NCBI RefSeq assembly: GCF_021869535.1
Contig: NW_026262712.1
Span: forward strand, 31,124,001 to 31,188,000
Length of the DNA: 64,000 nt
Source: Mytilus californianus
Taxonomy: Eukaryota
Direction of reading: 5' to 3'
Position 1 is the first letter of the stretch. Each line of letters starts with the position of its first letter. The notes beneath the pieces were generated by a model. It saw only the letters and a list, made by a program, of their open reading frames with translations. It was not told the origin of the DNA and searched no databases. Made by a program: the position numbers and the translations under genes. Shown piece by piece: positions 1,618-39,745 of this stretch.

Positions 1618-1714
1618 ATGAGTAATATAGTACACTGGATATTTATACAATTTGTATGTGGCTATTTTTGCAACTCTAACGCCTATGAAGTATACAGGCT
1701 TCCTGAAAGACATA
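1618..1714 (+). CDS. Exon 1, signal peptide (MSNIVHWIFIQFVCGYFCNSNA-YEVYRLPERH)
   Basis: True ATG, hydrophobic core, small-residue cleavage site S-N-A, strong donor a|GTAAGT (phase 1). Confidence 0.65.
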
Positions 1715-4700
1715 GTAAGTATACATACATTCACGTTTTTATTAACATTAACTTTTCAGGGCCAAACTATACAAGATACATTTACATAGTTGACATTCAG
1801 GACAATGGCTCAGCTACCTAAAATTGAATTTATATTGAACAAGAAAAGTGGTTAAACTCGAATTTATGTCGCATGTATAAAAAATTAAATGACCGTGATT
1901 CTGACAAAATATCAAGAAGTGACAACAATCTTTACCATGAACATAACGAAGTTGATGATATGACATCAACTGACTTTAAACATTTGCAACACAATATCTT
2001 TGTACACTGTCGCTTCAAAATGAGTTGTCAGTGACAGGACTTAAAAGTGTTAAGGGCATAATGAAGTACCATGAACAAATAAATCATCATTTTAAGAAAA
2101 AATTAATTATGCGTTTAGTTCATTTGATATTCATGTTATTATTGAGCGCTTGAAAATGAATGATATATTGATGTATTTGAGCGTTATCTTACTAATCAAT
2201 ACTGAGTATCGAATATTTCATGTTTTATTACAGATAGAAGATCCTTATTTTATTTTGACGAAGATCGTAGTGGTTAAACTTAACATTAGGCGTATTTTGA
2301 CTTCAATTTCAAATCATATCTAGCTGGTACTCAAATGTCGGTTTCTATAGTCCTAAATATTTATATATCTGGAGCATTTTTATTTTTCTAAATACCAAGG
2401 ACTTTCCTTCCATTGAATTGATTACCTAGGATGTATTTGGCAACAAATTTTGGGTCCTCAGTGATCCTAAACGTCATACTTATTAGCCTTTTTAAACGTT
2501 TGTGATACTAGCATAACTGATGAGTCTTTGGTAGACGGAACGAGCGTCTGGTTACGAAATATTAATTCTGGTATCTATGATGAGTGTATTTGTCGATACT
2601 TTGATTCAATATTTTTTTAGCTATTCTGACAATAACAATATATGAGGACATGTACATGCAACTATTTTTAAAAAAAAATAGACAGACAAAATCTAGTGAA
2701 TAATAAATATCAATAGTCGGAGAGAGACTGACAAAATCCGAACAAACACGAAAAAAGAAGGAAATGCAAACAACAGTTACAACAGAACAATACATAAAAA
2801 ATTAAAGACAGAGCAACACAAACCACACCAACGAATGCAGGTGATCTTATGTGACAGTTTAAAAAAACGTCTTTTTTTAAAGCAATCAAAAGAGGAAAGT
2901 GTAAAATTTATGATTATGACAAACGAAACAACATCTAGCTATGAAGAACTGTATCCCGGAATGGGAGGGCTAAAATGATATAGAAAGCAAGTGCCACGAA
3001 AATGATGTACATGTAAAATAATAATGTGTATTTCGTAATGACATAGCAAATTTACGGTTAAAATTCGAAACAATCGAAACAGATGATAATGAAAGAAAAA
3101 ATATTAAACGGTTGCACCAAAGATAAATATTTCAATCAGTTTTGTATAGCTTGTGATACAGGTTGTCCTTTTGAGTATTAAGACACTCATTGTCATAAAT
3201 TGAAAATTAGAAACAATCAATCATTGTCAAAGTCGGTAACTGGAAATCGCAGTTCATATATATATATATTAGATTTTAAGAATTGTTTTATTATTTAGAT
3301 ATCACCCATGTAAATGGATTAAAGTTCTTATCGCCATATATTAGTAATTTTGCAATAGGAGAACATAAAAGACTTGTTCTAAGATGTCAAGTGCGCACTG
3401 ACAGAGAACCTAATTTTGAGGTAAGATTGAACATGAAATTACAGTATGCATTACATCCAATTACAATTAATAAGAAAAGTTCAAGTATAATGTAAAGTAA
3501 TAGAAATACCGACTCAAGGAAAATTCATAACGGACAGTCATTTGAGAAACGTCAAAATCAACTGATCAAAAACATTAAACGAATAGAAAACAACTCTCAT
3601 ATTCCTGAATACGTACAGGCATTTCCCGATGTCGAAAATTGGGGATTATCCTGGTTCTATATAAACTTAAACCTTCTAATTGTATGACAGTCGTAGAAAA
3701 TTCCATTGACACCAATGTGTTAGCATAAAAAGAGCACAATACCACAATGACGTCAACAATATCAGATGAAAGTAAGGTAACCAATTTTGCTATGGATAAT
3801 CAAAGAAAAAACTCTTTTGATCCTTTGAAACCTTTTAAAAACAATAACTGTACTTGAACTAGGTCTTAAAATATCTATCTTAGCCTTGTTAACCAAACGC
3901 TCTATTTAAAACTTTTTAATGTGAGAATCAAAACGCCGATTACATTTTGAACGTCATTTTTGTGTAGACAAATCGACAGTTTTTTTTGCTATATAACATA
4001 TTTTATTTTATTGTAATGTTTGTCCTTAGACCAATGAACATCAGACAACATATTTATATAAGAATATGGGGACACTCATTTTTTTTTATTCATATATAAA
4101 AACTCGAACCTTATAATGAGTGCAAGATATAACTATCACAGTTTGATATAAGTGAAGTTATTTTTTTAACTAGAATTTTTAACTGGTTTATTTAAGGTCA
4201 CTAAATAAGTATTTTGTACACGGAACTCAGTTATGAGTTTCGTATCAATAATGAGTTTTGATGTGAAATTTTTATAAAGACTTTCGAAATGTTTTTCGAT
4301 AAAGTGCTGGAAGGATGTAGTATACGTTGCTGGAACGTGTGTAATAATGTTAGGATTGTTAAGTATTATGTTCCGATGTCCTACGTTTAATTGATTTCCG
4401 AGCAAATGAGCTTCGGTCGGAAGTCGGAAGTTATACAAGCATTATTTTGGAAGCTTAATACATTCTCGATAGTCACATAAGTGAACACAAATCAGTACCT
4501 TATTTAAAAACGAATGCTCAAATATGAAGAAACTCACTAAACATTGCTAAAATCATAGTTCATTTTTGATACAGCTGCGGAAGAGTTATTTATTCTTTCA
4601 TATGAAAATAAATCGAGGAATTCAAAGCACTGCGAACGCACCAAATTGAGACAAAATTACGTTGTTCTCCTCTTATATTTGATGCGTTTCCCTCAGTTTT

Positions 4701-7700
4701 AGTTTGTAACCCGATTTGTTTTTATCTCTATCGATTTATGAGTTTGGAACAGCGGTATACTACTGTTGCCTTCATTCATTGGAGTGGTTTACACCTATAT
4801 CTTATTATAAGCTTGTTAAAGGCGAAAATTGTATTAGCTAGTACTAACCAAAGGAAAAGGTGTTTAAGGCTTTTAACTTGAGGAAATGTGCGGAGAGAAA
4901 ATAAAACACTATCTATGTTAACCAAGTCATAAAATTTTATAATCGGAAATATATGTATTTGGTTCTAGATTAATAAGGGATAGACAAATACCACAGTTTA
5001 CAATATGTCCGGAAAAACGTCACAACAAAAACCCAAATGGCATTTATTAAAATAATAAATGAATTATATAACGACTGTCAAAGAATTATTCATTAAATAC
5101 GCCATTTTGTTGTTCATTGTTATGGCATGGAAGTTTTGGCGTATTCTATACAAATTGGAGATGTTCCTCCTTCCCAACGTCAGTTTTTATGTATATTCTG
5201 GGTCCGTCGTCAAGGAGAAGGGTTAGACGATATATTTCAAGTTACTTTAGAAGGTCACGACAACCAAGTTAAAGAAACTCAGCGATTTGTAAATATTTTA
5301 TTATTAATAGACCCTTTGTCATATTGATATGTAATTGCACGTTTTATTATTGTTAAAATGTGAATATTGGAAAATGTCTGTACACCGATTAGAAATTCAT
5401 TTTATTTTTCTACAATTTGTATTTGTTTTTCTAATAAGCTATTTATGATAACCTTCATAACTAATAATGTGTTTAAAAACCTTTGTGAGATTAGCAATGC
5501 TTTGAAATCGTTTTTTGTTTTTGTTTGTTTGATTGTGTTTATAGAATAAGCTTAAGACAATATTGTATGATTGTCAATGAGAATATCACTATCAATCACA
5601 GACCAAGTGACATATACGTTGTCAACAAAAGGTCAAAGAACGACCTTCAAAAATGAGGAATACCCCTGTGTTTATTTTGAGTAGTATAATTGTATTTAAT
5701 TATTCCCTTTTTTGTTTTTGTTGTATTAGATTCATAAGATTTGTCGTACACTGTAGTACTTTATAATTGTAAATAATCTTATAATTTCTTTATTTGTTTA
5801 ATTCTTTTGATTTCCTTTAGTGGGTAAGGATAGAGAACTCAACGTCTGCAAAAGTTATAAGAAATAATACTGACGATGGACGCTATTTGATCTTCGTAAA
5901 AAGACGACAACGACGGCGAGGTGACACATACAACAATAAACTTGTAATACGAAACACACAAGCATCAGATTCAGGAGTTATAAAGTGTCGTGTAAATGTC
6001 AGAGGGTCCGCTGTCATAGAAAGACAATTCAAAGTTAACGTTGGAGGTGAGTCTTACATTAAACAATAGCAGTCTCTATAAGTATTTACCTATAAAACGT
6101 TTAAACCGCAGCATTGGTATGCACCTGTCTAAAGTGAGGAGCCTGTTGTTCAGTGGTTGCCGTTGGTTGGTGCTGTTCATAAATTTTTACAATTTGTACA
6201 AATTATACCGTTGGTTTCCCTCATTTAATTGTTTAACAATAGTTATTTTGGTGCACTGTCATAGCTTGCTGTTCGTTGTGAGTCAATGCTCTGTGTTGAA
6301 GGCCGTACTTTGACATATGATTGCTTATTGTTGACACAATGTGATTTGGATGGACAGTTGTCTTATTGGCACTCATACCACATCTTCTTATTCATAATTG
6401 AAAAGTCTTATCAAGTGATAGGCGACATGTTTTAGCGGAAAGGTAATTGACTGTTATCTAACTTTACACATCACCAAATTCTTAAACCGTTGATTCATCA
6501 ATCATAATAGAGAGACGGAATATATAAAAGGAATAATAGCATAATTTGAATAGAAAATGACAATGTCATGCAAAAGAAAGAATACCGACAACACAACAAA
6601 CTGCAGTCTACCAAACATAACGTATACAACCAAAGACTTTAATAACCACATCAAAACCACAAGGGTTGATATTGAGTGCTCCATATTGGGATAAGCATAT
6701 CATGCTCTATTTTCGGTTACCGTCGTAGTGCTTATGTAAGTACAAACCTTGTTATAAGTGTTATGCATACAACTGTGATTTATATATGTGTTGATCAAAA
6801 CGCATCACTCAGATGTGTTTCTTCATAAAACGATGGTTTAAATACGTTATCTGACTTGCCAATGCAGGTGTTTGAATAAAGCTATGTTTAATGTCTCCAT
6901 ATGAATATAAATGCAACTCAATGAAAACCATACTTCCCTGCTCCCGAAGCGCTTTTTTATTTATCTTCATCAAGACGTTCATAGTCAGAAAATTGAAAGA
7001 TAAGTATGTATAAAAAACTTAATATTTGATGAACTATATAACCACAATAGATCACAAATAAAAAGTCAAATGCATCTAAAGTCAACTTTGATGAAGATGT
7101 AATGTAAATAGAGTTCGTCAATTTGAAGCCTAGAGTATTACCATTATTCAAAATTCTACGGTCGAATCATTTTTCAGAATTCTACATTTAATTCCTTTAT
7201 CAAATATCTAAGGTAGTATATTCAATTACAATATTTCTATTTGATACGAAAATGTGAACCATGCATAAGAGAGATTAATGTTGAAAAAGGTAAAATCACA
7301 AAATACTAAACTCCGAGGAAAATTCAAAAAGGAAAGTCCCTCATCAAATGGCAAAATCAAAAGTTCAAACACTTAGTGTGAAGGCCTTTATTAACACAAA
7401 GACAGATCAGGAAAATGAAATCAAAATTACAAATTAATTCATGGGATCACATCTATCCTACTAAACTTGATATGTCAGATTAAACAAATTTACTTACGTC
7501 AGCTTCGCATCGAGGCTTGAATCTAGTAATTTTCGATCAAGGATTGTGTTTTGATAAGATCTTAATTTTGCAATAAAAGAGAGTTATAGATTTATATGTT
7601 GTTGATCTTTCAAATCATCTTACGACTAGAACAATATTCTGAAAATTTGATCCGCGGGATACATCATTTGAAGTTCCCCGTTCTGTTATTTATAAGCAGG

Positions 7701-10700
7701 CTATAACATTGAATTTTAATAGAATATTCTAGACGTGAAGTATAGCTTTACGTAACATCTGCATTGTGATTTTAATTTAATTTATAACAATATTCTTTTT
7801 TGGTTCGCCAGACCAATCTTTTGTCTGCAAACGACTTATATGTGGCATTAAATCCAAAACCGAGTCTGAAAATCATAAACCATCAAAATGTCGAGAAATT
7901 GCGAAAAAGACAGCATAGACGTATATCAATATCCTTACGCCATTCTTACGTGCAATTTATCAGTTCATGACAATTTAAAGTAATTATTCATATTGCAAAT
8001 TTGCTCATCTGTTTTTCTCTTCAAAAAGGTTTCAAGTATTTCCAAGAAATGTACGGTTTACGGAGTTGAAACACCAATACCTTCCAACGAAAAGCAATTT
8101 ATCTATTATCAAATGATGTCAAAGTACTTAACATTTGTCATGTCATTTTCAGAATCTATATTGACTCCGATTAGACTGGAATCATACACTCAGCGTGGAG
8201 AAGGATTGCTCCGAATTCGCTTAAAGAACAAATGGACTTATTTTCATTACAATACTTTCAGTTCAGTAAAGGCCTCTATTGTGTGTCGGTCTCTTGGATA
8301 TCCGTATGTATACAATTTGCTTAAATAACCAGCTACTTTAATACAATTTATATACATTATTTTGATTATTTAAGTATATTAATCTCCTTCTATGATTCAA
8401 TGAATAATGAAGAAAAAGAGTAGTATGTAGGTGTCATGAATATTCATTCTTACAACTTAGTTACGTTTGTGGTTCAAGTATCACAGTAAATCTTGGTAAA
8501 AACACATCCATGCTTTCTATCTAATAATTGCGAACGGCTTTTTTTTATGTCTACAAAAATGTGGCGCTTGAATTCTGACAGTTTTGCACAAAAAACCATC
8601 GGGAACAAAATTCCACCAGCAGTGTATTACCGAAAGGTCTGAATTTAACAATATGATTCTGAATAAGACTGAAACATTTCTCGACGTTCGTAAAGTGTAG
8701 GACTCTACCTCAATATTTCGATAATCTTAAAGTATCACAATTTTGTATTGATACATTATCCACAATCTAAACAGTATCGGAGTTTATAAGCAGTCTAGAG
8801 GGTGTATGAGTTTGTTTTGACAATTTAAAGTGTGTTTGAGTTCTTGTTGACACATCTTCAGCCATCAAGTGTGTATTCGTTTTCCTCCACACCTTAATGT
8901 TATACCTAGTTTATTAAAAGTTTTGAATACAAAAACTAAAAGAATATTATGCACGTACGATCCAACGCTGATCCATTTAGTCTTTTATCTTTCTTATTGT
9001 TATGGTGTCTATTAAGAATTACAGATTGTTCATTAATTAGTGAATCAAGTAACAACAGTATTTAACTGAATGATGGAATCATTGAACGGCAGTATACATG
9101 AAGTGAATTTAACTCTGACGCCATTCTAATCGACCTAGGTTTAATCACTGAAAGAAATAAGCTTCTGACATTATCTAAACCTCAAAATGTACGAGCTTAT
9201 GTCTATGTTTCATAGCCAAGTTTTTTTTTTCATTAAAAATAATAAAAGCAGCATAATTTTCAAGTTGTATCAAATATTCAAGCATCTCATATCAATTTTA
9301 TTTATGTCTTTTTCTTCCAGATATGGGGGTGTAGCACGAAATACATATGAAGAACGAACTATATTAGGACATGCAGAGCATCACGTGTACAAAAGTGAAA
9401 AATATAACCCATATTGTATCTATGGAATCAGTTGTTTCCCAAATGTTACAGATATCGTCCAATGTCAAATAATAAAACAAAAAAAATGTTACTCTCCACA
9501 TGTGCTTGGAATTACTTGCAGGTTGGAGCCTGTTAAAAGTATGAAATAATTTATAACTTTATAACACTTGAAAAGTAAATGTATTAGCAAAAACAGTGAA
9601 CTGTATGAGCTCTTATACGACTTCCCCTTAACAAAACTTGGGTACTTAAAAAAGGCATTTGTGACACAATTTTAGTCTTTTCTCATACAGTTCAGTTGCA
9701 TTTTGCCGGTTTGTTTTAGTTTCAAATAATTGACAGGATAAATCAGTATCAAAAGCTTTTATTATAAACATGATAAATGTGAGATTGTTCTAAGGTTAAT
9801 ACATTCATGTTTTTTTTTCATTGTCGAAGGCCGTACGGTTACCTTTAATCGCTTACTCGTGTTACTGTGGATTCATTATTATGCGTTGGATACCAATTTT
9901 CTTTGGCTTTCGTGGTTATTTGGTAACCACAAATTCCAATATCCAACAATTTACAAATTTTCTTCAGGAATATATTCAGACTTTGTCCAAACAACAAAAT
10001 CAAACATCCACGAAAATGCATGTTTTCCTCAATCCACGTAAATTGGTACCCACGAAAATAAATGAATCCACAGTACATCGACTTTATAAGAATGTATGTT
10101 ACTGACAAGATATGACACTTTCACAATTCCAACGTTGAAATCATCACAATTTTCATGGATTTCCGTTTGAGATTCGTCCATATATTTTCATTTGTTTAGG
10201 TTATATCCGTAATATCATATATGAAATAAATAAAGTGTAAAGTATATTGATTTTAATTTTTTCAGTTCCAGACGTGCCTGTTCGTTTGTTGGTTCCAGGC
10301 ATGGGGGTCCTGAAGTTACAAGAGGGTGTTGTAGAAGTTTTTCTTGATGGTCATTGGGGATTCGTTAATATAAATTATATCGGACAGTCCGAAGTACATG
10401 CTCTTTGTCAAACCCTTGGTTTTAAGTAAGTAAACATAATTCTTTGTTTTATGAACACATTTATACTGCTACCATTTTTGTTTGACTATAGCCTTAAAAG
10501 GAGAACGAAGACACCATAAAGACACAAAATGAAATACTAAACTTGAAGAGAAACCTACGATCCCATGAAAAAACGAGGTATAACTCAAAAGTCTACAACA
10601 CGTTACATATTAAAATTCCAGAGTGGCGCTACGAACCTCACTTAAACCCGGATGTGGTTTCCGGTTATCAAGAAGAACTTCGATGAGCAGATACAAATCA

Positions 10701-19700: not shown

Positions 19701-22700
19701 ACTGTGTCTCTATTCCTTGTAATAATTGTAGTTCCAGAAGTTAAGTTTAGACTAAACGGAACATGGAGTGGTCAAGGTATTGGTATACTTGAGTACTTTA
19801 AAGACGGGTACTGGGGATATGTGTGTGGGGCCTATATGGGAACCTCTGAGGCATCGATGTTCTGTCACCAATTAGGATTTACGTGAGTAGAGAATATAAT
19901 TAACTACTTAATCATATCACATATAACCAGATACAACGGTTACTAAACTGCATTACATTCATGGACTTATTCCAGATTTTAAAAGAATTATAGGGAACTG
20001 CATTTTTTATCAAAGATTGACGTTCTCCATGTTTGTAGATAATTCATGCATATCATTACCGCTTGATACTTATCTGGTAAACTTGCACAAATACAAGGAA
20101 TATCTGATTATTTTCCAGCAGAACTATTCAAGTACTGTAAATGCTTGAATGTCCGTTTTTGTACTAAGAATAAATACAGTAATCTGTTTAAGTAATTTAT
20201 TATATAGAGCTTTCAAAATTCCAGGTTTTACTTCATGTAGTTTATAATTTGAAAGTTTTCAAAAAGGAAAGATTTGGTATAATTGACAATGAGACAACTA
20301 TCCACCACAGACCAAATTGCATACTTGTTAAGAACCGAACGGCCTTGCATGGTATAGAAATTTGTTATGAATTTGTTGCCAAGGTTGCACTGAAACCAAA
20401 TTTATTTTAAACTAACACTTCTTTCTAGAAACAAGCGCATAATCTGATCTGAACTAATACAATATAACAGTTTGATTTGATTTGTACTCTTTATTTACGT
20501 CGAACCGTGATAAAATGACAGTAAATTCAGTATAATTACAACATGACTAAACGATACCTAAGACGCATGCGCAGATAACGTTCAAAAGTACACCTTTTGA
20601 AATATGAAATCGAACGTCTTTAAACTAGGAAGACAATTAAGAAGAAAACATGACTTAAAATATAAGACCTTTAAAATGGAAAATGACTATTGGCTTAGAT
20701 TTCTCTTTTGCGAACCATTAACATTGTCTAAATTGTAAGAAATATACTGCATTATTTTGTTAAAATGGACTTTATAAAAAAAATATTAATCAACGAAGTA
20801 CAGAAATATCTAATCATTTTGAATTGGAACTTATTAACAATGATACAGACAGATATATAGATTTAATATGTTTTCTTATCAAATTATTGATATTACTAAA
20901 ATGCTATTTGTTTTATGTTTTGTTTGTATATTTTTACAGTAAAGGTGGTCGTCTTTTGTTTGGATATAACAATTATGGATATAGGAAAGGACAAAATCAT
21001 TTTAAACATGATATCGGACCAACCATATTAAAGTATATAGAATGCCCTTGGGATTCAGTTGAGCTCGATCAATGTTCAGAACGTTTATGGGCTTATAAAG
21101 ATGACATACTATCTTGTGAAATGCACACACTAGATGTAAAACTAAAATGTAATACAGAACCTTTCCCAGGTAATGTTTTAAAACTTTAAATCACAATTCG
21201 TGTGTTAGAGAAAAAGTAAAATCGAATGGACAACAAGAGAAATTATGTACTTGCATGTAAATGACGAAATGTAGCAATATGCATATTAAGACATTTTAAG
21301 CGATGCTCAGAAATATTCGAAAAACAAATTACATCAAATATTGAGTTTGGTGGAAGGAACACTATTTCAGTTGCCTGCTAGATGAGCAATGAAATCAGTT
21401 TTACCTTCATCAGCGGTTACAGCATTCATTCAATGGAAAAATACATCGAACTTGTATTGTAATGGCCTATCAAACATGAATGACAAATATTTTCTTTTCT
21501 CCGGACGATGCAAACAATTACTTCAACTACAATTTAAATTGCAAGTAGACACAATTGAATAAATAACTTGGACCCAAATTGGAATTGCACATCATCGCAA
21601 TTAAGGTCTTGAATAGCAAACAATAACTTTGATTGTATTTTAAGTTTTGGCTGAAGGGAGTTTGAAGATACAATATCAATAAAAGCTGTTTCAAACAAGC
21701 TTAAATTTTACATATTAAACATCTTATTTCCTTGCTTTTAATGATCAATTAATAGTAAACATAAAACATGACCAGATCCGTACCCGTTCTATGATTCTAA
21801 ATTTAGTAAGCAGAAAGTAAACATTCTAACTTTGATGCGAATAAAAAATTGATAAAAAAAAAAAAAAAAAAAATTGCAAAATTATGGTTCTAGAGGAACA
21901 GCTTGGGGTAGTTATTAAAAAATAAGCATGTTTTCATAGCAAACTGACGGTATATAACAAAGAGGTACATGTAATGTGGTCATCTAAGATGTTTATCACT
22001 GTGTTTGTCAGTGTGCACTGTTTTGACGAAATCTTGCCATACGAAACAAGAGTCTTATGCCTATATCAAATTGCAAGACAGATACGATATATCTGTGTAT
22101 TGAACCACCAGTGGTTTTTGATAATTAGAATGCTTAGATATGGACACCGATTTACAGTTAGTTTTCTTTTCCTTTTTGTGACATTAGTAAAACTGTTGAT
22201 TCGCATGCACAGTAATTGACTCCCATCCCACCGAACTAGCTGGTCCTCCCTTATGAGTTCACGCTTACCTTAGTCAACAACTTGACTTTCTGTTGTCCTC
22301 AGTGATTTCTAAGTAGAAGCTATTTTGATTATCAAAACGAACACTGACATTGTATAGTTCACTTTGTATTAATCCTAACACAAAGAAAAGTTTAAGTAAA
22401 CAAATCGAATTATTGTCATTTTACATCCAGGGAATCAACCTAATAAAAACCAAATGCTTCTGTGATGATTTAAACCTACTACTTTGTAACCCTGTAAAAG
22501 ACTACATACTATAAAGGTTACTTGCTTTACATATGTAAATATGTGGTCATTGAGCATCTGATCGCAGGCAAATATTTCACTTGTTGGCTTTTTTTAAGAT
22601 TACGAAATACAACTATTTGGTGGAAATTCAAACAATTCTGGACAACTTCTTGTGAAATATGAGAACACATGGTTGAAGGTAACACCTGAACGATTTGAAA

Positions 22701-25700
22701 TAAGAAATGTAGCTGTTGTTTGCCGGCAGCTTGGATTTAGGTACACAATAATTTTGTTTTATCATATATGTTAATAAAAAAAATCAAGTTGAGAATGTAC
22801 TTTGATTAATGAGGGTGATAAAGGGTTATTTTTGTGCAACGTTTTCGGCCTTTTATTTCACGTGTTTTCGTGTTTGGACGTTTTATTCAACGTTTTCTCG
22901 TGTTTGGTTCGATTTTCTTGCTTCGTGTTTCCCCATATTTATTTTCCGTGTTTCGTGTCGGAACTCTTAATTTCACGTGCTTGTCCCGCATTTGATTAAA
23001 AAGTAAACCGTGACTTATAAAAGTCACCCCAGATATCAAGTTACTATGAATGTTTTATTAATTTTTTTAAATCAGATGCAACTAGCGTACGCTTAAAGGT
23101 CACCGCAGGGTCTTCTTGTCCGTTAATAATGACTGCATGATCTCCAAGAATGGCGGAGTTATAACTTCTAGTACTTGTTTCTTAAGATATACGATCTTAT
23201 TTCTCGTGCTTCGTTTTTTCCGATTATTTTTCCGTGCAACGTTTTTGCGAATTTAATTTCACGTGTTTCAGTGTCCCCCCCCCCTTTTACCAACCTCATT
23301 AATTAATATAATATAACAATAAAAAAAACACCACATAAAACAACATTGTTTTGGTATTTAAATGATCTGGGTGAACTTTTTCATACTAATTGTTGTACTG
23401 TACATCTTATAAGCAATGCGGCGTGACAAAAGAAATGACATTCCCCAGGAAGATTTGAAACAGGTGTGAATATTCACATTCCTAACGCGTGATTGATTTT
23501 CTATACCAGTCAATCTCAATTTCATCGAACAATAATATAAATCATTTGACTATTCCATCTTTAACACAAGCTTTCATCATTCAAAAATATAAGACAAATT
23601 TAATTAATTGAACTTAAGGATACCACACAATAAGACAAATTCAATGAGTTGAACGAAAGGATATCACACAATAAGACAAATTGAATGAGTTGAAATAAAG
23701 AATACCACACAAATAAGACAAATTCAATGAGTTGAAATAAAGGATATCACACAATTAAACAAATTGAATGAGTTGAAATAAAGGATACCACACAATAAGA
23801 CAAATTGAATGAATTAAAAAAAGGATACCACACATACATTTAAATCTAATTCATATCATGACTTTCATATAGTCATTTGTTTTTAAATATTGCATTGTTT
23901 GAACCTGTCCTAAGTCAGGAATCTGATGTTCAGTAGTCGTCGTTTGTTGATGTGGTTCATAAGTGTTTCTCGTTTTTATATAGATTAGACCGTTGGTTTT
24001 CCCGTTTGAATGGTTTTACACTAGTAATTTTTGGGGCCCTTTATAGCTTGCTGTTCGGTGTGAGCCAAGGCTTTGTGTTGAAGACCGTACTTTGACCTAT
24101 AATGGTTTACTTTTATAAATTTTGACTTGGATGGAGAGTTGTCTCATTGGCACTCATACCACATCTTCTTATATCTATTTACTATAAATGTAGTTTCAGA
24201 ACTAAACTTTACTTTAGAAATGATATAAATAATCAACGTAGCACCTTATCGCCCTTTTTTCAAGCAAAATATATGTTTAGAATCAGCATAAATGGAGCAT
24301 CCAGGAGAAAAACAAAGATGACAAACATCTTTAAATCTGTTGCCTAGTAATAAACGCAATATGACTCAGAAGTGTTACGGAGACACTGAAGTGCGATGGT
24401 CACGCCGAAGTGCGATGGACCGTTCGCTGATGTGCGATCATTTTTTTGACGCATTTTGGCTAGTATAAAATCTACAGATGTGCATTTATTATGAGAAGTA
24501 CATGTTGATGATTTCCACCATTTACCGTTTATCGTGATGCGGATAGTATGTTTGTGGACCCGATTATGTTAAGAGAACGTTACACTCCATTGACGTGAAA
24601 AAAAAAAAAAAAAAAAAACATTTGGTAGATTTCGAAAAAAAGCCGTAGAAGGTTAACCTACCAGTTTTTAACCAATCCTTCCTGTTTCTCTTCGTATATA
24701 CAGGTATTTAAAGGATTTAAGCCCAACATCAACTTAAAACCCTTGAAAACTGCTTCTAACATACAAATTGATTTCTATGTTGACGTGAAAAGCGTTGAAA
24801 TGTAATTTGTGTAAAAACCATCAAACTGCAGCGTGATTAAAATATATCCCAGCGTCAAAACACCGAGCCTCAGCCTGACCATGGCGGTTAAGAGTCCATT
24901 ATTCATTATTTATATATAATTTTCAATACAAATTACTATGCTCGTCTTGCTTAAAAACCAACTATCGATTTGTAGCTCCATGATGTTGAATTTCTTTTCA
25001 ATATATTCTAATCTCAAAGTATATTACACTGTTGACAAAACAATATGTGTCAGAAATGATTTTAAGTATAAATGGTTAATTTCAACATGTAGACATAAAG
25101 GGGTAGAACTATATCAAGCGTACATTTAAACTCATCGAAAGACATCCATGTCAAGATAAAACTGACAACGCAAAAAACAAAAACGACGAAAAGATAAACG
25201 TGAGTATACCAAGCATAATATACAATGTAGAAATCTTAAGACTAAGCATTGACCCCCAACACACACCAGGTGTTATCTCAGATGCTCCGGAAGGGTAAGC
25301 AAATCCTGCTCGACAGGTTGAATAATGATGAGATACGGATCATGAATTTAAACCACAAATACAAGGAACATTCTTTATTAATTACTGTTTGTTTTATATT
25401 TACAGAAGAATATTCTATTTAAATGTTCATCAATAGATATTACAAACAAAAGGAATTGTGTATTTGTCAATCAATGTAAAAAAAAATGTTTCCTATAGCA
25501 TATTGAAGAAGTATAAGAAAAATATCAAACTCCAGTGTTAAATTAAAAGAGGGAGTTTGTAAAAACTGGGAATAATCAAATGTTAAAACAAATCTAACAC
25601 GAACGCCAACAAAAAGTAGATGTAGCTCACTTTTTCGACAAATAAGAAATTAGAATATACATACAAAGGTAGAAAAAGGAAAACAACACTTTAGAAAAAC

Positions 25701-28700
25701 CAATGCGACAGAACCGCACCTTCGTATGCATCCGCACCAGAAACGCCTTAAACCAAAAATTCGATACCTGAGTATATAAAATACCACGTCACGTCAAGAT
25801 GCAAAATATCAAAATGAACATAATAGCACAAAGACAATTAAAGGCAATAATGTAAAGTTAAAAAATGCTTCAGCTTCTTAAATTTTATTTAAAGGCAATG
25901 CTAAGAACTAAAAAGATATTTTACAAAATTTAAACATTGCAACCAAGTGCTTGCTACAGATTTACGTAAGCCTCTAATAGAATAATTTGAGGGAATATCA
26001 AAGGGGAAAATTTAAATCTCATACAAATTCGAAATAGTGGTGACCTAGCCACTATTTCAGAGATTGAAATCTCATAGGTCGAGCAAACGAAACACATGTT
26101 AAAATAACTCTCCATAAAGAATAAAGACTGACCATAAAAACCGGATTTGATCTAATGGCATCCGTCTTGTAATGCATTGTAATAATATACCAAAGATGTA
26201 AACTGTGTATTACAGACATGGTGGAGAAATGCACGTTAATATGTCCATTTACGAAAATAGTAAAAATTGGTTGAAACTGGTATGCAATGGACAAGAACAA
26301 AATGTTGGACAATGCAACGGAGTGCATAGATTGTCTAGCAATGCGTGGTATAGTTACAGGAGTGCTGCGGTGTTCATTGAGTGCTATGATATCAACGGTC
26401 CAGGTATAAATAAAATCGTTTGTAGTGTAGTTAAGATTTTTCTAAATTATTGAATGACAATCATCAAATATTGCATAAAGAACACACTTTATGTCAAATA
26501 ATATAAATACGAAGATGTGCTTTGAGTGCCAATGAGATAACTCTCCATCCAAGTCCCAATGTCTTAAATGTCAATAATTATCGGTCAAAGCACGGCCTTT
26601 AACACGTAGTCATTGTTCACTCCGCACTGCAAGCTATTAAGGTCCCCGAAATGACTAGACTAAGTTTAAAACAATTCAAACAAGAAGACCAACGATCCTA
26701 TCATTATATATAAAAAAAAAACGCGAAACGAGAAACACTTACGAACCACACCAACAAAGACAACCTCTGAACAATAGACTCCTGTTATAGGAACAGGTGA
26801 ATTTAAATGCGGGTTGAAATGTTTAACAGGCGCAAATGAATTGGTTAGCTTCCCTTTAAGTAACACGTTTAACTCTTTGCTTTAATATTTGCTAATGTGC
26901 TTTGTCTATATGCCTTTCTGTGCTTCTGTGATACATATTTGTTGGTTTTTATAGCAAATAAGATAATAACACAATGGTGATTCCTTTTCCTCTATTTTTG
27001 ACATTTTTACCTATTACGCATGTCTGTTTGTTTTGTTCACACATCGTTGTCAATATCAAAGAATTTGATGCGTAAGAGGTTTAGCTAGCTTTTAAGCCAG
27101 ATTTTATCAACCATTTTCTACATAAGAAAATGCCTGTACCCAAGTCAGGAATACTTCAGCTGTTATGCATTCGTTTGATGTGATTTAGATTTTGATTTTG
27201 TAATTTGATCAAGGACTTTCCGTTATGAATTTTCCTCGGAGTTCAGTATTTTTGTGATTTTACTTTTTAGGTCACATGATAAGCTGTAAAAAAATACCAC
27301 AGGTCATTAGGTATATATCAAGCAAAACACTTGGAACAAATAACAAATAACTGATTCGGTTTTGAACATATCTCTAGTTGATACACAAATGAAAGTTTTA
27401 TAAAAAAAGTTTATTAAAATTAATCGAGCTAAATTAGTTTTAGTCACGTTGTTTGGTATCACTGAAACCGGCTGAACGCCAATCGATTTATTATCTATTC
27501 TGCTTAGATGTCGAGTTACAAAGCAAAATATTGCAAATTTCGTAGTGATTTGCAAAATGTAATTATGAACTGAAGTTGCTTCAACTAAGGTATGTATGGA
27601 GGCCTCAGTGATTGTGCTTCCCTGATTTAGTGAAAAGATGTCATTAAATGACTTTGCTTTGAGATTCAAATTTAAATCATGATTAATTTCTTTTAGAACT
27701 CAAAATGACTGTCTCTTTAAAAAGTGATGGAAAAGTTAATGTCCATCGATTAGGAGCAACATGGCAAATATGTGCCTCTGCATGGAATTCTTATCAGGAA
27801 CCTCTATGGGATGATGTAGGTGCAACTGCTGTCTGTCGTATGCTCAATAATAGGTAAAATTATTAGACGTTTCAGAATTTAATGCATTCTGGGTAATATG
27901 CTCCTCTGCAAGGAATCTATATGAGATGCTGTAGGTGCAAATGCTGTCTGTCGTATGCTCAATATATATATATATTAGGTAAATTGATTAGACGTTTCAG
28001 AATCTAATGCAATCTGGGTAATATTTTCAAAGCGGACACCAAAAGGTTGTGATTGGTTTAAATTGGTAATAAACAATAGAATATCAACCAATGACGTTAC
28101 GATTCTTTCTTTTTTGGTTTACGAACATTGAGATTACCAATTGTCCTTTGGATTCTGAAATCGTGAATTAAAACAATTTCATTAATAAAAATTCTTTAAA
28201 AAATTAACATTTGAAAGTTGTGTAATGTTGAGATCATAAAATACAATGTTTAAGCGAATTTTACGCTGAAGTTGCAAGTGTACCAGCAAAAAATCCCTAT
28301 CTTATATTATAATAATACTATGAAGAAATGGTTTTCTGTTACACCACTCTCCTAAGTTGAGGACAGGATTGAAAGCTCGTAATGCAATTAACCATCGCCA
28401 CAAACGTAGTGTGCCAACCCACGCTAGGAGCCTTACACTCATTAGTTTTCGTTGGATTGCAATAGTTGATTTTGTTTTGCTTTTAGTATAAACCAGTTAC
28501 CTCATTCTCTAAATATCAAACAATTTTGATTCACGCAGCATTTCAATTTTATAAGAGGGAAGGAATGCCTTTTACCCTATGTCTTCAAACAGTCATTTTC
28601 GGCTACCATCATAATTAGACGATTCTTTTATCGTCAAAACGAAAAATATAAATGTTATCGTCATGTGCAAAAAAATTAGCATTAACGTCGTTTAGCAACA

Positions 28701-29856
28701 TGTGTTACCGTTATTCGTCATTACAACCTTGTCGTAGTACGGCTTACTCTTTATTAAGTTTCCGATCATAATGATTGTCGAAGTTTGTACACATTTTTGT
28801 CTGTTTGTCTATGTTGGAAAGTTATCGTATTGTCAGCTGTACTACATTCCTTATTTCATTATTATCAAAATACTACCAGGCCATAAATGGAAGATCTGAA
28901 TGTTCTTTAGTGTCTTTGACAATCCTTTACAATATCAAGTAATTAAGAAGTAAATCACTCCGCTTGGAACATAGATGAAACTTTATAAAACTATTCAAAT
29001 CCATTGATTGATTCTCTCAATTTGACACGTTTGCTTATGACAGCTTTTGCGACCTCAATTTGGCGTAAGATTAATGGGTGATGTAGAATAAAATTTCATC
29101 GCAGACTTGTTCCGCAGCAGGATATGTAAAATCAACTCGGGTTTTGTCGTGGCGTTATCAGATGATATTCAACGTATGAGTTTTGAAATTTCCTGGTATC
29201 TTTCGCATCTTTGATAATGATAAAAAGTAAAAGAACACAAATACCGAACTCCAATGAAATTCAAATCAGAAAGTCCTAGCTTATCAAATGACAAAATCAA
29301 AAGCTCAAACACATCAAACAAATTGAGAACAGTTGAAAAGCCAAATCAGTTATGAAGTGAAACAGCATTGAAATTCAAAATGAAAAAAAATAATTATTCT
29401 GACGTTTTACTAGAAGTAAATTTTAAGAAAAAAATCTTATGTTATTATTACCAGAAAGGAAAGAAAAAACGGAGTGTTATCATAACCTTATGAGCAAAGC
29501 ATCTATGAGTTTGACTGTCCCTCTGGTATCTTTCGTCCCTCTTTTAGACACATCATTGGTATTTTTATCAGATTGATTTCATTTATGTAAATAACGGGAT
29601 GAAATATTCTACTAGTTTCAGCAATGCAACTGCAACACACATACCATATGATTATAAAGGATTTCCAGCAACAGCAAATAACATACAACAACTTTACTGT
29701 CCGAGGGGTGCTTCACATCTTGGAGATTGTTTCTACGGGGGTTACATAAGTTATAAAGAATCAAAGTTAGCATCTCCATGGCAACCAGGTGCTTGCAGGG
29801 AGGAAGATTCATACTACACGTTAACACGACGAGGAGGTGTTCGATGCAACATATAA
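1618..29856 (+). CDS. Multi-exon gene (15 exons, 873 aa predicted): secreted Ig domain + 6x scavenger receptor cysteine-rich (SRCR) protein, DMBT1-like
   Basis: join(1618..1714,3299..3420,5821..6046,8153..8303,9321..9538,10266..10425,11204..11406,11671..11821,13150..13340,19732..19882,20940..21169,22599..22740,26216..26403,27697..27853,29622..29856) = 2622 nt. All introns are GT..AG, phases 1,0,1,2,1,2,1,2,1,2,1,2,1,2, with no internal stop. Motifs: signal peptide; Ig C..W..L-x-I..DSG-x-x-x-C; six SRCR units of RL..G..EG.VE..W / C-x-x-LG[FY] / C..C..C. Confidence 0.85.
2398..2590 (+). mobile_element. Second pLTR/retrozyme-like repeat with a degenerate hammerhead (about 2511..2555)
   Basis: CTGATGA-GTCT(TTGGT)AGAC-GGA-ACGAGCGT-C. 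An inverted, truncated relative lies at about 62455..62720. Confidence 0.55.
3299..3420 (+). CDS. Exon 2, Ig domain N-half (ITHVNGLKFLSPYISNFAIGEHKRLVLRCQVRTDREPNFE)
   Basis: Acceptor ttatttag|, donor GAG|GTAAGA; B-strand LVLRC. Confidence 0.8.
5821..6046 (+). CDS. Exon 3, Ig domain C-half (WVRIEN...KLVIRNTQASDSGVIKCRVNV...FKVNVG)
   Basis: Acceptor tttcctttag|, donor G|GTGAGT; C-strand Trp, E-strand L-x-I, F-strand DSG-x-x-x-C. Confidence 0.88.
6105..6392 (-). repeat. Interspersed repeat family B
   Basis: Reverse complement match to 39746..40085. Confidence 0.75.
8153..8303 (+). CDS. Exon 4, SRCR1 N-half (IRLESYTQRGEGLLRIRLKNKW...IVCRSLGY)
   Basis: ttttcag| acceptor, CC|GTATGT donor; SRCR N-half pattern. 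Confidence 0.82.
9321..9538 (+). CDS. Exon 5, SRCR1 C-half (YGG...PYCIYGISCFPNVTDIVQC...KCYSPHVLGITCRLEPVK)
   Basis: tttcttccag| acceptor, A|GTATGA donor; SRCR C-half cysteine pattern. Confidence 0.82.
9865..10073. mobile_element. MITE, Tc1/mariner-like (TA target duplication)
   Basis: TA|CTGTGGATTCATT...AATGAATCCACAG|TA, 209 bp, non-coding. Confidence 0.85.
10266..10425 (+). CDS. Exon 6, SRCR2 N-half (PVRLL...EGVVEVFLDGHWGFVN...ALCQTLGF)
   Basis: tttttcag| acceptor, AA|GTAAGT donor; clear SRCR motif. Confidence 0.88.
11204..11406 (+). CDS. Exon 7, SRCR2 C-half (YGGESY...ILRNLSCSENALHFNECNHTVWG...LAIKCWTHSEI)
   Basis: gatttag| acceptor, T|GTAAGT donor; lies in a frame the ORF track does not show. 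Confidence 0.85.
11671..11821 (+). CDS. Exon 8, SRCR3 N-half (VRLAGSNIEHEGRVEILHNNVWGTVNDYW...ANVLCKMLGY)
   Basis: Most canonical SRCR sequence in the gene; CC|GTAAGT donor; not in the ORF track. Confidence 0.92.
12560..12752 (-). mobile_element. Partial inverted copy of the 30437..30828 MITE
   Basis: aatggcttatatctcgaaaacaagcacac..ccttca..cttgttattttgaaacaga.tagcg.acatcc|TTAA is the reverse complement of 30437..30580. Confidence 0.7.
13150..13340 (+). CDS. Exon 9, SRCR3 C-half (YGG...GQGPTWIDFIECPLDANDLQDC...AFIKCRTEPVE)
   Basis: atctgcag| acceptor, G|GTATTT donor; G-x-GP-x-W motif. Confidence 0.9.
13449..13872 (+). repeat. Interspersed repeat family A (two adjacent copies)
   Basis: aaaagtaaaatcacaaaaatactgaactccgaggaaaattcaaaacggaaagtccctaatcaaa... 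Other copies at about 3494, 7284, 15966, 19286(-), 27021(-), 29223, 32679, 49561, 56252. Confidence 0.85.
13905..14560 (-). mobile_element. Penelope-like (Naiad-type) RT fragments and 3' UTR
   Basis: MWILKNSKELLDN..TFDF.TLYTTIPH-like segment at 13985..14150, and an ORF end DLVDKYSVSTSQIIHNG at about 14480..14555 followed by UTR. Confidence 0.65.
15151..15286. repeat. Nested palindrome (long hairpin), probably a transposon terminus
   Basis: aggattaaacacattttttctagaggttattgatg / catcaataacctcttgaaaaaaatgtgtttaatcct, with an inner hairpin 15206..15250. Confidence 0.8.
16135..17460 (+). pseudogene. Highly decayed Penelope-like (Naiad-type) RT plus 3' region
   Basis: Translates with stops as FLDNI*VSFGNKFYR*VVCIPFGLNFAP...AYRYCDNIYSLNNQDFSKY, homologous to the 46-kb RT. 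The 3' part recurs at about 49805..50290. Confidence 0.7.
17581..18900 (-). mobile_element. CR1/L2-type LINE 3' fragment (RT C-terminus, 3' UTR, (GTT)n tail) interrupted by a nested repeat
   Basis: ORF 18220..18750: ICSKISSRL..FY..I..INYCCIVW..LQKRAARLIL..L..LNW..FMYSGPFLWNNLP. Tail AATAAAGTATTGTTGTT... at 17581..17620. Confidence 0.85.
17748..18115 (+). repeat. Interspersed repeat family D nested in the LINE
   Basis: taaaggcaacagtagtataccgctgttcgaaattcataaatcgat... Other copies at about 4575..4772(-) and 18993..19145. Confidence 0.8.
19286..19442 (-). repeat. Interspersed repeat family A
   Basis: Reverse complement of 13449..13570. Confidence 0.8.
19732..19882 (+). CDS. Exon 10, SRCR4 N-half (FRLNG...GILEYFKDGYWGYVC...ASMFCHQLGF)
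   Basis: attgtag| acceptor, AC|GTGAGT donor. Confidence 0.88.
20940..21169 (+). CDS. Exon 11, SRCR4 C-half (KGG...GPTILKYIECPWDSVELDQC...LSCEMHTLDVKLKCNTEPFP)
   Basis: tttttacag| acceptor, G|GTAATG donor. Confidence 0.88.
22599..22740 (+). CDS. Exon 12, SRCR5 N-half (YEIQLFGGNSNNSGQLLVKYENTW...VAVVCRQLGF)
   Basis: ttttttaag| acceptor, AG|GTACAC donor; canonical AVVCRQLGF; not in the ORF track. Confidence 0.88.
22810..23298. mobile_element. MITE flanked by TTAA
   Basis: TTAA|TGAGGGTGATAAAGGG...CCTTTTACCAACCTCA|TTAA; imperfect 16-bp TIRs. Confidence 0.6.
23585..23834. repeat. Intronic minisatellite, 41-bp unit x about 6
   Basis: aaggataccacacaataagacaaattcaatgagttgaaata; units at 23616, 23657, 23698, 23740, 23781. 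Confidence 0.92.
23892..24178 (-). repeat. Interspersed repeat family B
   Basis: Near-identical reverse complement of 39746..40040. Confidence 0.85.
26216..26403 (+). CDS. Exon 13, SRCR5 C-half (HGG...WLKLVCNGQEQNVGQC...AVFIECYDINGP)
   Basis: tattacag| acceptor, G|GTATAA donor; C-x-G-x-E motif. Confidence 0.85.
26505..26835 (+). repeat. Interspersed repeat family B
   Basis: Diverged direct match to 39746..40085. Confidence 0.75.
27021..27268 (-). repeat. Interspersed repeat family A
   Basis: Reverse complement match to family A. Confidence 0.8.
27697..27853 (+). CDS. Exon 14, SRCR6 N-half (LKMTVSLKSDGKVNVHRLGATWQICASAW...GATAVCRMLNN)
   Basis: ttcttttag| acceptor, AG|GTAAAA donor; not in the ORF track. 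Confidence 0.8.
27768..28024 (+). repeat. Tandem duplication (about 125 bp) of the exon 14 3' end, donor and intron start
   Basis: Copy 1 about 27768..27899, copy 2 about 27896..28024; both contain gtaggtgcaa.tgctgtctgtcgtatgctcaat..taggtaaa.t.attagacgtttcagaat.taatgca.tctgggtaatat. Confidence 0.85.
29622..29856 (+). CDS. Exon 15 (terminal), SRCR6 C-half (...QQLYCPRGASHLGDC...GACREED...GGVRCNI*)
   Basis: tttcag| acceptor (an in-frame alternative AG gives 29616); TAA at 29854..29856; no donor after the last Cys. Confidence 0.8.
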
Positions 29857-29879
29857 ACATTCTACATACTTATTCAATG

Positions 29880-29910
<31 letters not shown>

Positions 29911-30333
29911 GTATATACATAAGCATTCGACATAATTATTCAGTGCAACATATGAACATTTGACATACTTTTCCAATGCAACATATTAACATTTGACATA
30001 CTTATTCAATAAAACATACAAACATTTTACATACTTATTCAGTGCAACTTTTAAACATTTGACATCCTTATTCAATTCAGCTTTTAAACATTTAACATAC
30101 TAAATCAATTCACCTTTAAAACATTGACACACTTATTCAATGCAACTTTTATACATTTGATATACTTATTCAGTGCAACTTTTAAACATTTGAAATACTT
30201 ATTCATTATAACTTTAAAGCATTTGACATACTTATTCAATGCAACTTTTAAACATTCGACATGCTTATTCAAAAACATGTCAACATAATTATTCAATTTC
30301 TCATATGAGCAGTTGACATACTTTTTCAATATG
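29845..30333. repeat. Minisatellite, 33-bp unit x about 14, starting in the last codons of the SRCR gene
   Basis: Consensus tgcaac(a/t)t(a/t)taaacatttgacatacttattcaa. Unit 2 contains an (AT)n expansion. Confidence 0.92.
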
Positions 30334-39268: not shown

Positions 39269-39745
39269 CTGCATAGAATATGTACAATTTGAATATAAAA
39301 AACTGACGTATAAATTTTTATATAATGAATATGTAAAGAAACCAATTCATTAAGTTATGTGGAAATCTAAGCTAGCCCCAAATTTATTGCATATTCGCCA
39401 AACAAATTAAGTCATTTACATCAAATATCCTAAAATACTTTGGCAAGTTGTCTAACTCACTCTATTTGCAATGCAATTAAACAAGGTATCGATGGCAATA
39501 TAAGAAAATTGGACATGTTAGGGGTGATTAATTTCCCCAACAACACAGAAATTTACCGAATCTTACTCTTGTGCAGTGTTAATATGGTAGAATGTATCAC
39601 TGCATTTTGAAAAGTATGCTCGATAATTTTTAGATTGCGTGCATGAGATTACTTCTCACCTTATTTTTTTATGGTCAAAAGACAAGAGAATAATGTAACG
39701 AGTCACTGACAAGGTTTTTGACTAAGGAAGAAACAAAGCAATTGT

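Follow-up and report, generated by a model that had tools for sequence, protein, structure and literature searches.

The window, a stretch of 64,000 nucleotides of Mytilus californianus DNA, carries at 1618-29856 of the + strand a gene of 15 exons, which we rebuilt independently (Table 1). Every intron of the rebuilt model is bounded by GT...AG, and the coding sequence of 2622 nt encodes a protein of 873 aa followed by a stop codon. This protein is 99.8% identical to XP_052064963.1 (P0032; M. californianus; 875 aa), the longest RefSeq product at the locus, which bears the automatic and borrowed name "egg peptide speract receptor-like". The sole difference is 'SF' (Ser-Phe), as the RefSeq acceptor of exon 15 is placed at 29616 instead of 29622, 6 nt upstream. 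The rebuild and the near-identical RefSeq protein bear out the 15 in-frame exons and 873 aa proposed in a preliminary description of this DNA. The gene is real, transcribed and protein-coding, and it is already annotated automatically in the M. californianus RefSeq. Exons 7, 8, 12 and 14 had been reported as absent from the default list of open reading frames; they are indeed missing there, because they are short or lack an in-frame start codon. The acceptor of exon 8 is weak (TTGAAG), and its boundary is identical in RefSeq and in M. coruscus. The M. coruscus ortholog has kept 15/15 exons, and their splice sites are unchanged. The first part of the 3' flank is a minisatellite, whose beginning overlaps the final codons and the stop codon of the gene.

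Table 1. Exons of the Ig-SRCR gene and the adjoining repeat (positions in the window).
Feature	Position	Strand	Content
Exon 1	1618..1714	+	Start codon, predicted signal peptide (~aa 1-22), start of mature chain; ends in phase 1
Exon 2	3299..3420	+	First half of Ig domain, including C62
Exon 3	5821..6046	+	Second half of Ig domain (W74, DSGVIKC with C129); RRRGD insertion of clade A
Exon 4	8153..8303	+	SRCR1 N-half; PF00530 positions 5-41, E 0.0012
Exon 5	9321..9538	+	SRCR1 C-half; PF00530 positions 53-100, E 0.06
Exon 6	10266..10425	+	SRCR2 N-half; PF00530 positions 7-41, E 9e-5
Exon 7	11204..11406	+	SRCR2 C-half, four-Cys domain; PF00530 positions 59-99, E 0.002
Exon 8	11671..11821	+	SRCR3 N-half; PF00530 positions 2-41, E 8e-9
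Exon 9	13150..13340	+	SRCR3 C-half (four-Cys); domain boundary here is the end of clade-C paralogs
Exon 10	19732..19882	+	SRCR4 N-half; PF00530 E 3e-5
Exon 11	20940..21169	+	SRCR4 C-half; PF00530 positions 49-100, E 0.003
Exon 12	22599..22740	+	SRCR5 N-half; PF00530 E 3e-7
Exon 13	26216..26403	+	SRCR5 C-half (four-Cys); exon alone without Pfam match
Exon 14	27697..27853	+	N-half of divergent sixth SRCR-like domain; PF00530 E 0.01
Exon 15	29622..29856	+	C-half of sixth SRCR-like domain and TAA stop; no Pfam match
33-bp minisatellite, 13 copies	29840..30272	.	Found by Tandem Repeats Finder

The N-terminus encoded by exon 1 is the same as that of XP_052064963.1, and its pattern is kept in the paralogs; cleavage of the signal peptide is predicted after S-N-A. 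A Kyte-Doolittle scan in 19-residue windows gave no value above 1.25 and no transmembrane (TM) segment beyond the predicted signal peptide. The C-terminus is hydrophilic, without a GPI-type tail, and the stop lies three codons past the last Cys, as had been described. In every full-length paralog, the last SRCR Cys is followed by 1-2 residues before the stop. Pfam analysis of XP_052064963.1 revealed only Ig and SRCR domains and no CUB, ZP or enzyme domain. Onward splicing, which the preliminary description had named as a point to check, was not found: no annotated RefSeq isoform continues to a TM, CUB, ZP, LOX or protease domain. The structural outline given there (a signal peptide and one Ig domain followed by an SRCR array, with neither a TM nor an enzyme domain) therefore holds. 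Since neither a TM segment nor a GPI-type tail was detected, the protein is probably secreted, the signal peptide being predicted from the sequence pattern.

The single Ig domain is I-set-like and scores marginally over the Pfam threshold. For XP_052064963.1, the scores were 30.7 for Ig_3 (cutoff 30), 27.9 for V-set (cutoff 26) and 25.4 for I-set (cutoff 23.7), with the matches spanning residues 48-147. When single exons were searched, exon 2 gave no Pfam match, and exon 3 matched V-set, Ig_3 and I-set with E 0.003-0.01. The Ig signature consists of C62, W74 and DSGVIKC129; 66 residues separate the two cysteines, the same number as claimed earlier. The AF2 model of the domain (pLDDT 69) was matched by Foldseek to Ig domains with a probability of 1.0 and TM scores of 0.6-0.7, and it resembles the Ig domains of neuroplastin, CD147, titin and Dpr. 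An RGD at aa 106-108 lies inside an RRRGD insertion that is specific to clade A of the family, is preceded by a furin-like RQRR and forms the tip of a hairpin of the Ig domain in the AF2 model. The RGD is kept in 4/4 clade-A sequences (M. californianus and M. coruscus). Besides members of the family, an exhaustive search with the Ig exon recovered only generic multi-Ig proteins, each matched over several stretches; no kinship with VIgLs (FREP, CREP, GREP) was detected in this search. Three of the multi-Ig matches were looked up by name: fish hemicentin-like, Dscam-like and hypothetical.

Six SRCR domains had been claimed for the remaining part of the protein. Five of them are clear by Pfam (PF00530 matches XP_052064963.1 over 5 stretches with 218 bits, the cutoff being 26.1), and the sixth, encoded by exons 14-15, is only SRCR-like and very divergent. 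A phase-2 intron that follows an 'LG[YF]x' motif divides each domain in two, and the exon halves match PF00530 positions 2-41 and 49-100. The domains match the SRCRs of CD163, CD5L, M2BP, MARCO and DMBT1 by sequence. SRCR5 aligned with SRCR4 in hhalign at E 1.6e-6, in an alignment limited to the N-half and the opening residues of exon 13. In the case of the sixth repeat, the alignment with SRCR4 was weak (E 0.005, probability 7.5%), and a profile search of the PDB gave only CD6 (0.03) and M2BP (0.33); in the positions of its cysteines and the phases of its introns, the repeat is colinear with the other five. The AF2 model of domains 5-6 is of low confidence (pLDDT 31).

SRCR domains of group A have six rather than eight cysteines, and each is encoded by two or more exons. 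The number of Cys in the mussel domains is 4 or 6, and C1 and C4 of group B are missing; both partners of the C2-C7 disulfide (group-B numbering) are gone in three domains. The cysteine map showed that one of the six Cys of SRCR1 is relocated and that SRCR4 has the canonical six-Cys, group-A-like pattern. With two exons per domain, the SRCR domains are group-A-like. Ligand binding by DMBT1/SALSA is mediated by DD/DD/E cation-binding residues, and the dual cation site of SALSA SRCR8 comprises D1019, D1020, D1058, D1059, N1081 and E1086 (PMC7043408). An alignment with canonical 'WGTVCDD ... DDVKC ... EDAGVVC' domains revealed that this set is absent from 6/6 mussel SRCRs. At most one of the acidic residues is kept, in SRCR3.

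Expression was followed in a single RNA-seq run, X6. Depth was 0.3-2.6, confined to exons 3-8 and to one orientation, which corresponds to low expression; it was zero in unique intron bins. In the case of the Ig + 3-SRCR paralog (clade C), full-length intronless spliced transcripts were present in two RNA runs (L001, L004). The join between exons 3 and 4 of the window gene is predicted from RefSeq, homology and these paralog transcripts, since no splice-junction read for the gene was among those listed for X6. The lack of an exon 3-exon 4 read in that list, together with the fact that RefSeq models can be ab initio, could suggest that the join is an annotation artefact and that exons 1-3 and 4-15 belong to separate transcripts. 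We regard this as extremely improbable, considering that the paralog's transcript contigs join the N-terminal signal peptide-Ig block to SRCRs, that phase 1 out of exon 3 agrees with phase 1 into exon 4, and that the RNA depth of exon 3 (~2) is similar to that of SRCR exons (1.65 for exon 6). Moreover, independent predictions in M. coruscus, M. trossulus and M. edulis show the same layout, and no alternative start or stop fits.

Relatives of the gene were found only in Mytilus, where they form three clades; each species has 1-7 models in the databases, and several of these are fragments. The window gene belongs to clade A; a clade-B copy lies 4 kb upstream and a TLR gene 7 kb downstream. The tandem B-A pair is present in two species, and M. 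coruscus has several clade-A and clade-B models. The family was built by tandem duplication and by gain or loss of exon blocks at phase-1 domain borders, which gave the 3- and 6-SRCR forms. Public annotations of its members are all mislabelled (speract receptor, neurotrypsin/PRSS12, CD5L-like, M130-like). Comparison with the M. coruscus ortholog, which has a premature stop in the assembly of that species, gave a dN/dS of 0.25 overall, 0.14 for the Ig domain and 0.14-0.43 across domains. This data indicates that the window gene is under purifying selection. Between individuals, ten exonic variants were observed in 537 nt, of which 6/10 are synonymous. DNA run X3 had an even depth of ~40 over the unique parts of the exons 3-8 stretch.

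These results bear on the proposal of the preliminary description that the protein is an SRCR counterpart of the FREPs, CREPs and GREPs. It is not supported beyond analogy, because the family is small, restricted to Mytilus and under purifying selection, because the Ig exon matches only the family and generic multi-Ig proteins, and because the DMBT1/SALSA cation residues are absent from the six SRCRs. The existence of precedents for the architecture (FCRLS, invertebrate SRCR proteins) weakens it further. A true functional VIgL counterpart would be one of a set of diversified, polymorphic humoral receptors with presence/absence or somatic variation. The outline is the same (secreted, with signal peptide, N-terminal Ig and C-terminal recognition-type domains), the several M. 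coruscus models of clades A and B are lineage-specific duplicates, the premature stop could be a null allele, and the variants between individuals point in the same direction. However, there are only three clades with few, partly fragmentary models, dN/dS is low in every domain, most of the variants are synonymous and DNA depth is even. In addition, the Ig exon lacks specific relatives outside the family, and SRCR is not a lectin domain. Thus, we consider this reading very unlikely.

The borrowed RefSeq name would imply a role in gamete or reproductive recognition. The points in favour come down to this automatic name and the genus-restricted distribution; restricted distribution is common among reproductive proteins. 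The identity with the speract receptor itself was rejected: that receptor is a membrane protein, the mussel protein has no hydrophobic segment past the signal peptide, and the architectures differ. The resemblance to SRCR proteins of echinoderms is generic (22-27%), and selection is purifying, whereas proteins of gamete recognition typically evolve under rapid positive selection, which makes a reproductive role highly improbable.

Our preferred reading, with a probability of roughly 0.55, is that this real and transcribed gene encodes a soluble extracellular multivalent Ig-SRCR binding protein, for which a humoral role would be likeliest. The product is probably a soluble glycoprotein of ~850 aa with a signal peptide, an I-set-like Ig domain, five clear SRCRs and a divergent sixth, and would act extracellularly as a multivalent binding protein. 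The SRCR array may contact ligands through parts of its surface outside the classical Ca2+ site, and the N-terminal Ig domain may make another contact; in clade A its partners are possibly hemocyte integrins, bound via the conserved exposed RGD. Humoral recognition or opsonization would be the most likely single function of the protein. A bolder version is that clade-A proteins are bridging opsonins, in which the SRCR array binds microbial or altered-self surfaces independently of the Ca2+ site and RRRGD docks hemocyte integrins. This version is decidedly unlikely; if true, Mytilus would have invented, from Ig and SRCR modules, an analogue of MFG-E8 or peroxinectin-type RGD opsonins.

An alternative is a structural or adhesive component of the extracellular matrix (mucus, byssus, shell matrix, cell-matrix adhesion) not involved in immune recognition, with SRCR and Ig domains as scaffolds for protein-protein interaction and RGD as a cell-attachment site. 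The loss of the classical cation site for ligand binding, the purifying selection on a small Mytilus-restricted family and the RGD in an exposed loop all agree with it. Moreover, passages in reports on limpet mucus (PMC7333891) and the sea-anemone pedal disc (PMC6626399) mention SRCR proteins in adhesive secretions of marine invertebrates. On the other hand, no proteomic or tissue finding puts the protein into byssus, shell or mucus, RNA run X6 showed low expression, and the protein has no low-complexity or DOPA-type composition. We find a matrix role unlikely.

Mussels are unusually tolerant of pathogens, and only part of their repertoire for humoral recognition has been mapped. A genus-restricted secreted Ig-(SRCR)n family near a TLR gene is a reasonable candidate for functional work. 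The family also illustrates clearly how domains are shuffled at phase-1 introns: entire blocks of exons separate its 3-SRCR from its 6-SRCR forms. Our literature search revealed no paper on the Mytilus Ig-SRCR family and no published expression, binding or challenge data for it. The Mytilus family is uncharacterised, but a claim that the architecture is unprecedented is too strong, as a soluble chimera of this kind (FCRLS) and the co-occurrence of Ig and SRCR in invertebrates have been published. The novelty of the gene is accordingly modest, and it opens no long-standing question. Its main practical value is a corrected description of a mislabelled family.

Mammalian FCRLS, like the mussel protein, is a soluble chimera of Ig-like and SRCR domains without a TM; its gene adjoins the SRCR gene CD5L, and its function is unknown (PMC7940838). 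FCRLS has several FCRL-type Igs followed by a single group-B SRCR, whereas the mussel family has one Ig and three or six group-A-like two-exon SRCRs. Since no sequence relation was found in any search, the two have independent origins. DMBT1/SALSA/gp340 and CD5L/AIM are also secreted and have tandem SRCR domains. Unlike in the mussel protein, these are group-B, eight-Cys, single-exon domains without an accompanying Ig domain; DMBT1 in addition has the CUB and ZP domains that the mussel protein lacks. The DD/DD/E Ca2+-dependent ligand site (PMC7043408) is a feature of vertebrate DMBT1/CD5L and is absent in the six mussel domains. The sea-urchin sperm speract receptor shares tandem SRCR domains with the mussel protein, but it is a single-pass membrane protein with four SRCRs and no Ig, in contrast to an Ig and six SRCR-type repeats without a TM. 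The two resemble each other no further than SRCR domains do in general.

Among invertebrates, Ig domains were catalogued in SRCR-superfamily proteins of Acropora, Nematostella, Crassostrea, Pinctada and sea urchin (PMC10855680, Tables S5 and S6). That survey did not include Mytilus, and none of its Ig/SRCR proteins is characterised. Our profile searches revealed no homolog of the Mytilus family among the catalogued proteins. In the Acropora examples (PMC10855680), the SRCRs are N-terminal to many Igs, often with MAM and TM, whereas in the mussel protein the Ig is N-terminal. The VIgLs of gastropods (for example PMC5433772 and PMC10075465) are secreted, as the mussel protein probably is, with an N-terminal IgSF part and a recognition-type C-terminal module, and they form families specific to mollusc lineages, as the mussel family does. 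The C-terminal module of VIgLs is lectin-type (fibrinogen, C-type lectin, galectin) and that of the mussel protein is SRCR; VIgL families are large and diversified, whereas the mussel family is small and constrained.

The gene model was rebuilt by translating stop-free segments and reading the splice sites. It runs on the + strand, with AG/GT at every intron and a CDS of 2622 nt; its 15 exons join in frame into 873 aa and a stop, as the preliminary description had proposed. The spacing of 66 residues between the Ig cysteines was obtained again on counting (C62 to C129), and the stop lies three codons past the last Cys, as described, with no GT in between. The phases of the introns follow a regular scheme: every SRCR domain lies between phase-1 introns and is interrupted by a phase-2 intron immediately 3' of an LG[YF]x motif, and the Ig domain by a phase-0 intron. 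The window is AT-rich (GC about 31%). A word search seeded with one Ig-exon match retrieved the database version of the product, XP_052064963.1, an 875-aa protein named 'egg peptide speract receptor-like [Mytilus californianus]'. It shares 99.8% identity with the rebuilt model; the sole difference is two extra residues (Ser-Phe), present because the annotated exon-15 acceptor lies 6 nt upstream of that in our model. The locus sits on scaffold JAKFGE010000006.1 of assembly GCA_021869535.1. The gene is already present in the RefSeq machine annotation, with the same structure and under a misleading name. The protein collection keeps only the longest product of each gene, here the 875-aa protein. 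Since this is the longest product recorded at the locus, there is no longer annotated isoform with a TM, CUB, ZP, LOX or protease domain, in agreement with the preliminary description of a product with no TM and no enzyme domain. We estimate the probability that the gene and its architecture are real at about 0.9.

One RNA-seq run, from the same study as the best-matching DNA run and sampled to about 6%, was mapped to positions 5822-11821 of the window. The RNA depth was 0.3-2.6 over exons 3-8 only and zero in unique intron bins. The first mate was on the minus strand in all RNA reads, a layout that in most stranded libraries points to + strand RNA. No splice junction of the RNA run was present among the joints listed for 5822-11821; the listed joints were repeat-derived and came from DNA. 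Two runs guessed to be RNA (X1 and X2) were rejected, as they act as DNA, to judge by their contigs, which span exon-intron borders. The junctions of the gene receive strong, indirect support from paralog transcripts. Two intronless Logan transcript contigs, L001 (1633 nt) and L004 (1683 nt), encode a complete paralog with a signal peptide, an Ig domain and three SRCR domains; this paralog shares 99% identity with a protein of M. coruscus. A literature search for the SRA run that yielded the paralog transcript gave nothing relevant. The introns contain repeats, presumably abundant transposable elements, which showed very deep coverage in every DNA run and, in the RNA run, transcription in both directions. 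The many 'joints' of the DNA run originate in them.

The M. coruscus ortholog keeps all 15 exons with identical boundaries and 86-96% nucleotide identity. The dN/dS ratio between the two species (Nei-Gojobori) was 0.25 overall, with 0.14 in the Ig domain and 0.16-0.43 across the SRCR domains. In assembly GCA_011752425.2, the ortholog differs in two places: codon 169, in exon 4, shows CGA>TGA, and a homopolymer that closes exon 5 is longer by two A. Both are bypassed in the deposited annotation, which omits most of exon 4. The differences may reflect errors of assembly or a null allele. Among ten exonic variants in reads or contigs of other individuals, six were synonymous.

Domain searches were performed with single exons of the model, and whole-protein searches with XP_052064963.1. 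Exon by exon, the N-terminal halves of the SRCR domains matched Pfam PF00530 at positions 2-41 (E 8e-9 to 0.01), and four of the six C-terminal halves matched it at positions 49-100. Exon 3 alone matched V-set, Ig_3 and I-set (E 0.003-0.01). For the whole protein, Pfam returned SRCR with 218 bits in five stretches (gathering cutoff 26.1), Ig_3 with 30.7 bits (30), V-set with 27.9 bits (26) and I-set with 25.4 bits (23.7). The AlphaFold2 model of the Ig region, built from a 12-sequence alignment, is a β-sandwich with pLDDT 69. Its closest PDB matches are the N-terminal Ig domains of neuroplastin and CD147, titin M10, obscurin and Dpr/DIP Ig1; judged by these matches, the modelled domain is I-set-like rather than a V domain of the antigen-receptor type.

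The sixth repeat showed only weak SRCR likeness in Pfam, profile and PDB searches, and the AlphaFold2 model of SRCR5-6 (8-sequence alignment) was unusable, with pLDDT 31. This repeat is colinear with the other five in its cysteines and intron phases. The six domains contain 6, 4, 4, 6, 4 and 6 cysteines, respectively, with the group-B cysteines C1 and C4 absent. In all three four-cysteine domains both partners of the C2-C7 disulfide are gone, and such paired loss fits folded domains under constraint. A putative signal peptide was recognised by a 12-residue hydrophobic core and S-N-A at -3 to -1. The protein is likely secreted, because beyond the N-terminus no stretch of 19 residues reaches the hydrophobicity of a TM segment and the C-terminus is polar.

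When the Ig exon was compared exhaustively with 1.84 billion representatives by phmmer, 30 matches were obtained. All eight single-stretch matches were Mytilus sequences or short contigs of the Ig-SRCR family. The others matched in several stretches each, in the style of multi-Ig proteins, and the three that could be named were fish hemicentin-like, Dscam-like and hypothetical proteins. In single-sequence and profile searches, relatives were found in five species only (M. californianus, M. coruscus, M. edulis, M. galloprovincialis and M. trossulus); below them ranked generic SRCR proteins with 22-27% identity. A maximum-likelihood tree divided the family into three clades with full support. 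Clade A holds the window gene. The clade B member XP_052064975 (816 aa) is its upstream neighbour, 4.2 kb away and in the same orientation, and this B-A gene pair recurs in M. coruscus. The first residues of XP_052064975 (MSNFGIGENN...) fall within the Ig domain, and it lacks a signal peptide. As orthologs in other species carry one, the 5' end of this model is probably annotated wrongly. Clade C proteins (511-512 aa) have three SRCR domains and end exactly at the exon-9 domain border. The public names of the family disagree: speract receptor-like, M130-like, neurotrypsin/PRSS12, CD5 antigen-like and LOXL3B-like.

The product would act as a soluble, multi-domain extracellular binding protein. 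Ligand binding by SALSA is mediated by acidic residues of a dual cation site (PMC7043408). In a residue-level comparison these residues were missing from all six mussel SRCR domains, so that the analogy with DMBT1/SALSA is weakened. The GRVEVxxxxxW / VEVLxxxxW motif is kept in SRCR2 and SRCR3. It was rejected as a sign of bacterial binding, since PMC7043408 shows GRVEVxxxxxW to be buried in the fold and found nothing to support its binding of ligands. A three-residue insertion specific to clade A yields RRRGD at the tip of an Ig hairpin in the AlphaFold2 model. The surrounding basic stretch combines the RGD tripeptide with a furin-like RQRR. The insertion is kept in all four clade A sequences (the window gene and three that are from M. 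coruscus or unlabelled) and absent in clades B and C, which suggests that the RGD may be an integrin contact. A role of the protein in humoral recognition or as an opsonin is a tentative proposal, with a matrix or adhesive role and a reproductive role as its rivals.

Some 7 kb downstream, the strand opposite to the Ig-SRCR gene carries a single-exon ORF for a Toll-like receptor. A minisatellite begins in the last codons and stop of the Ig-SRCR gene. Further downstream, two adjoining ORFs encode a tandem repeat of roughly 35 aa (…IIGYFRFRKCHFRSHMIALFTLIPKIYGL…) with only a sub-threshold, zinc-finger-like Pfam match; they are probably satellite or repeat-derived.

Coordinates of the Ig-SRCR gene and of associated features (window positions unless another locus is named)
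Feature	Position	Strand	Details
Ig-SRCR gene	1618-29856	+	15 exons
Basic stretch KRRQRRRGD	5900-5935	+	aa 99-108, Ig domain
Intronic repeats	6222-6421, 7222-7421, 9822-10221		
Intronic/downstream ORFs	18223-18750, 44797-45138, 46268-46540, 54563-54895		Pfam: nothing meaningful
33-bp minisatellite	29840-30272		13.2 copies, 76% matches
(AT)n run	29884-29921		
Toll-like receptor ORF	36690-39287	-	865 aa; LRR_8 1.5e-26, TM-like segment, TIR 8e-22
Tandem-repeat ORFs	54563-55207	+	
Codon-169 TGA, M. coruscus ortholog locus (L002)	L002:21037-21039		Exon 4
Homopolymer difference, M. coruscus ortholog locus	L002:~23830		End of exon 5
XP_052064975, M. californianus DNA upstream of the window (L003)	L003:10001-34308		Clade B

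Soluble Ig + SRCR chimeras are exemplified in mammals by FCRLS (PMC7940838), and a survey that did not include Mytilus (PMC10855680 Table S5) lists Ig domains among the SRCR partners in cnidarians, oysters, pearl oysters and sea urchins. Our literature search, also under the RefSeq and UniProt names combined with Mytilus, found no paper describing the mussel family. Given these precedents and the result of this search, the family is a lineage-restricted form of an already known Ig + SRCR architecture. Its likeness to FREPs, CREPs and GREPs appears to be architectural only. In the Ig-exon search the mussel Ig domain showed no specific kinship, its C-terminal partner module (SRCR) is no lectin, and the family has few members and is under constraint.
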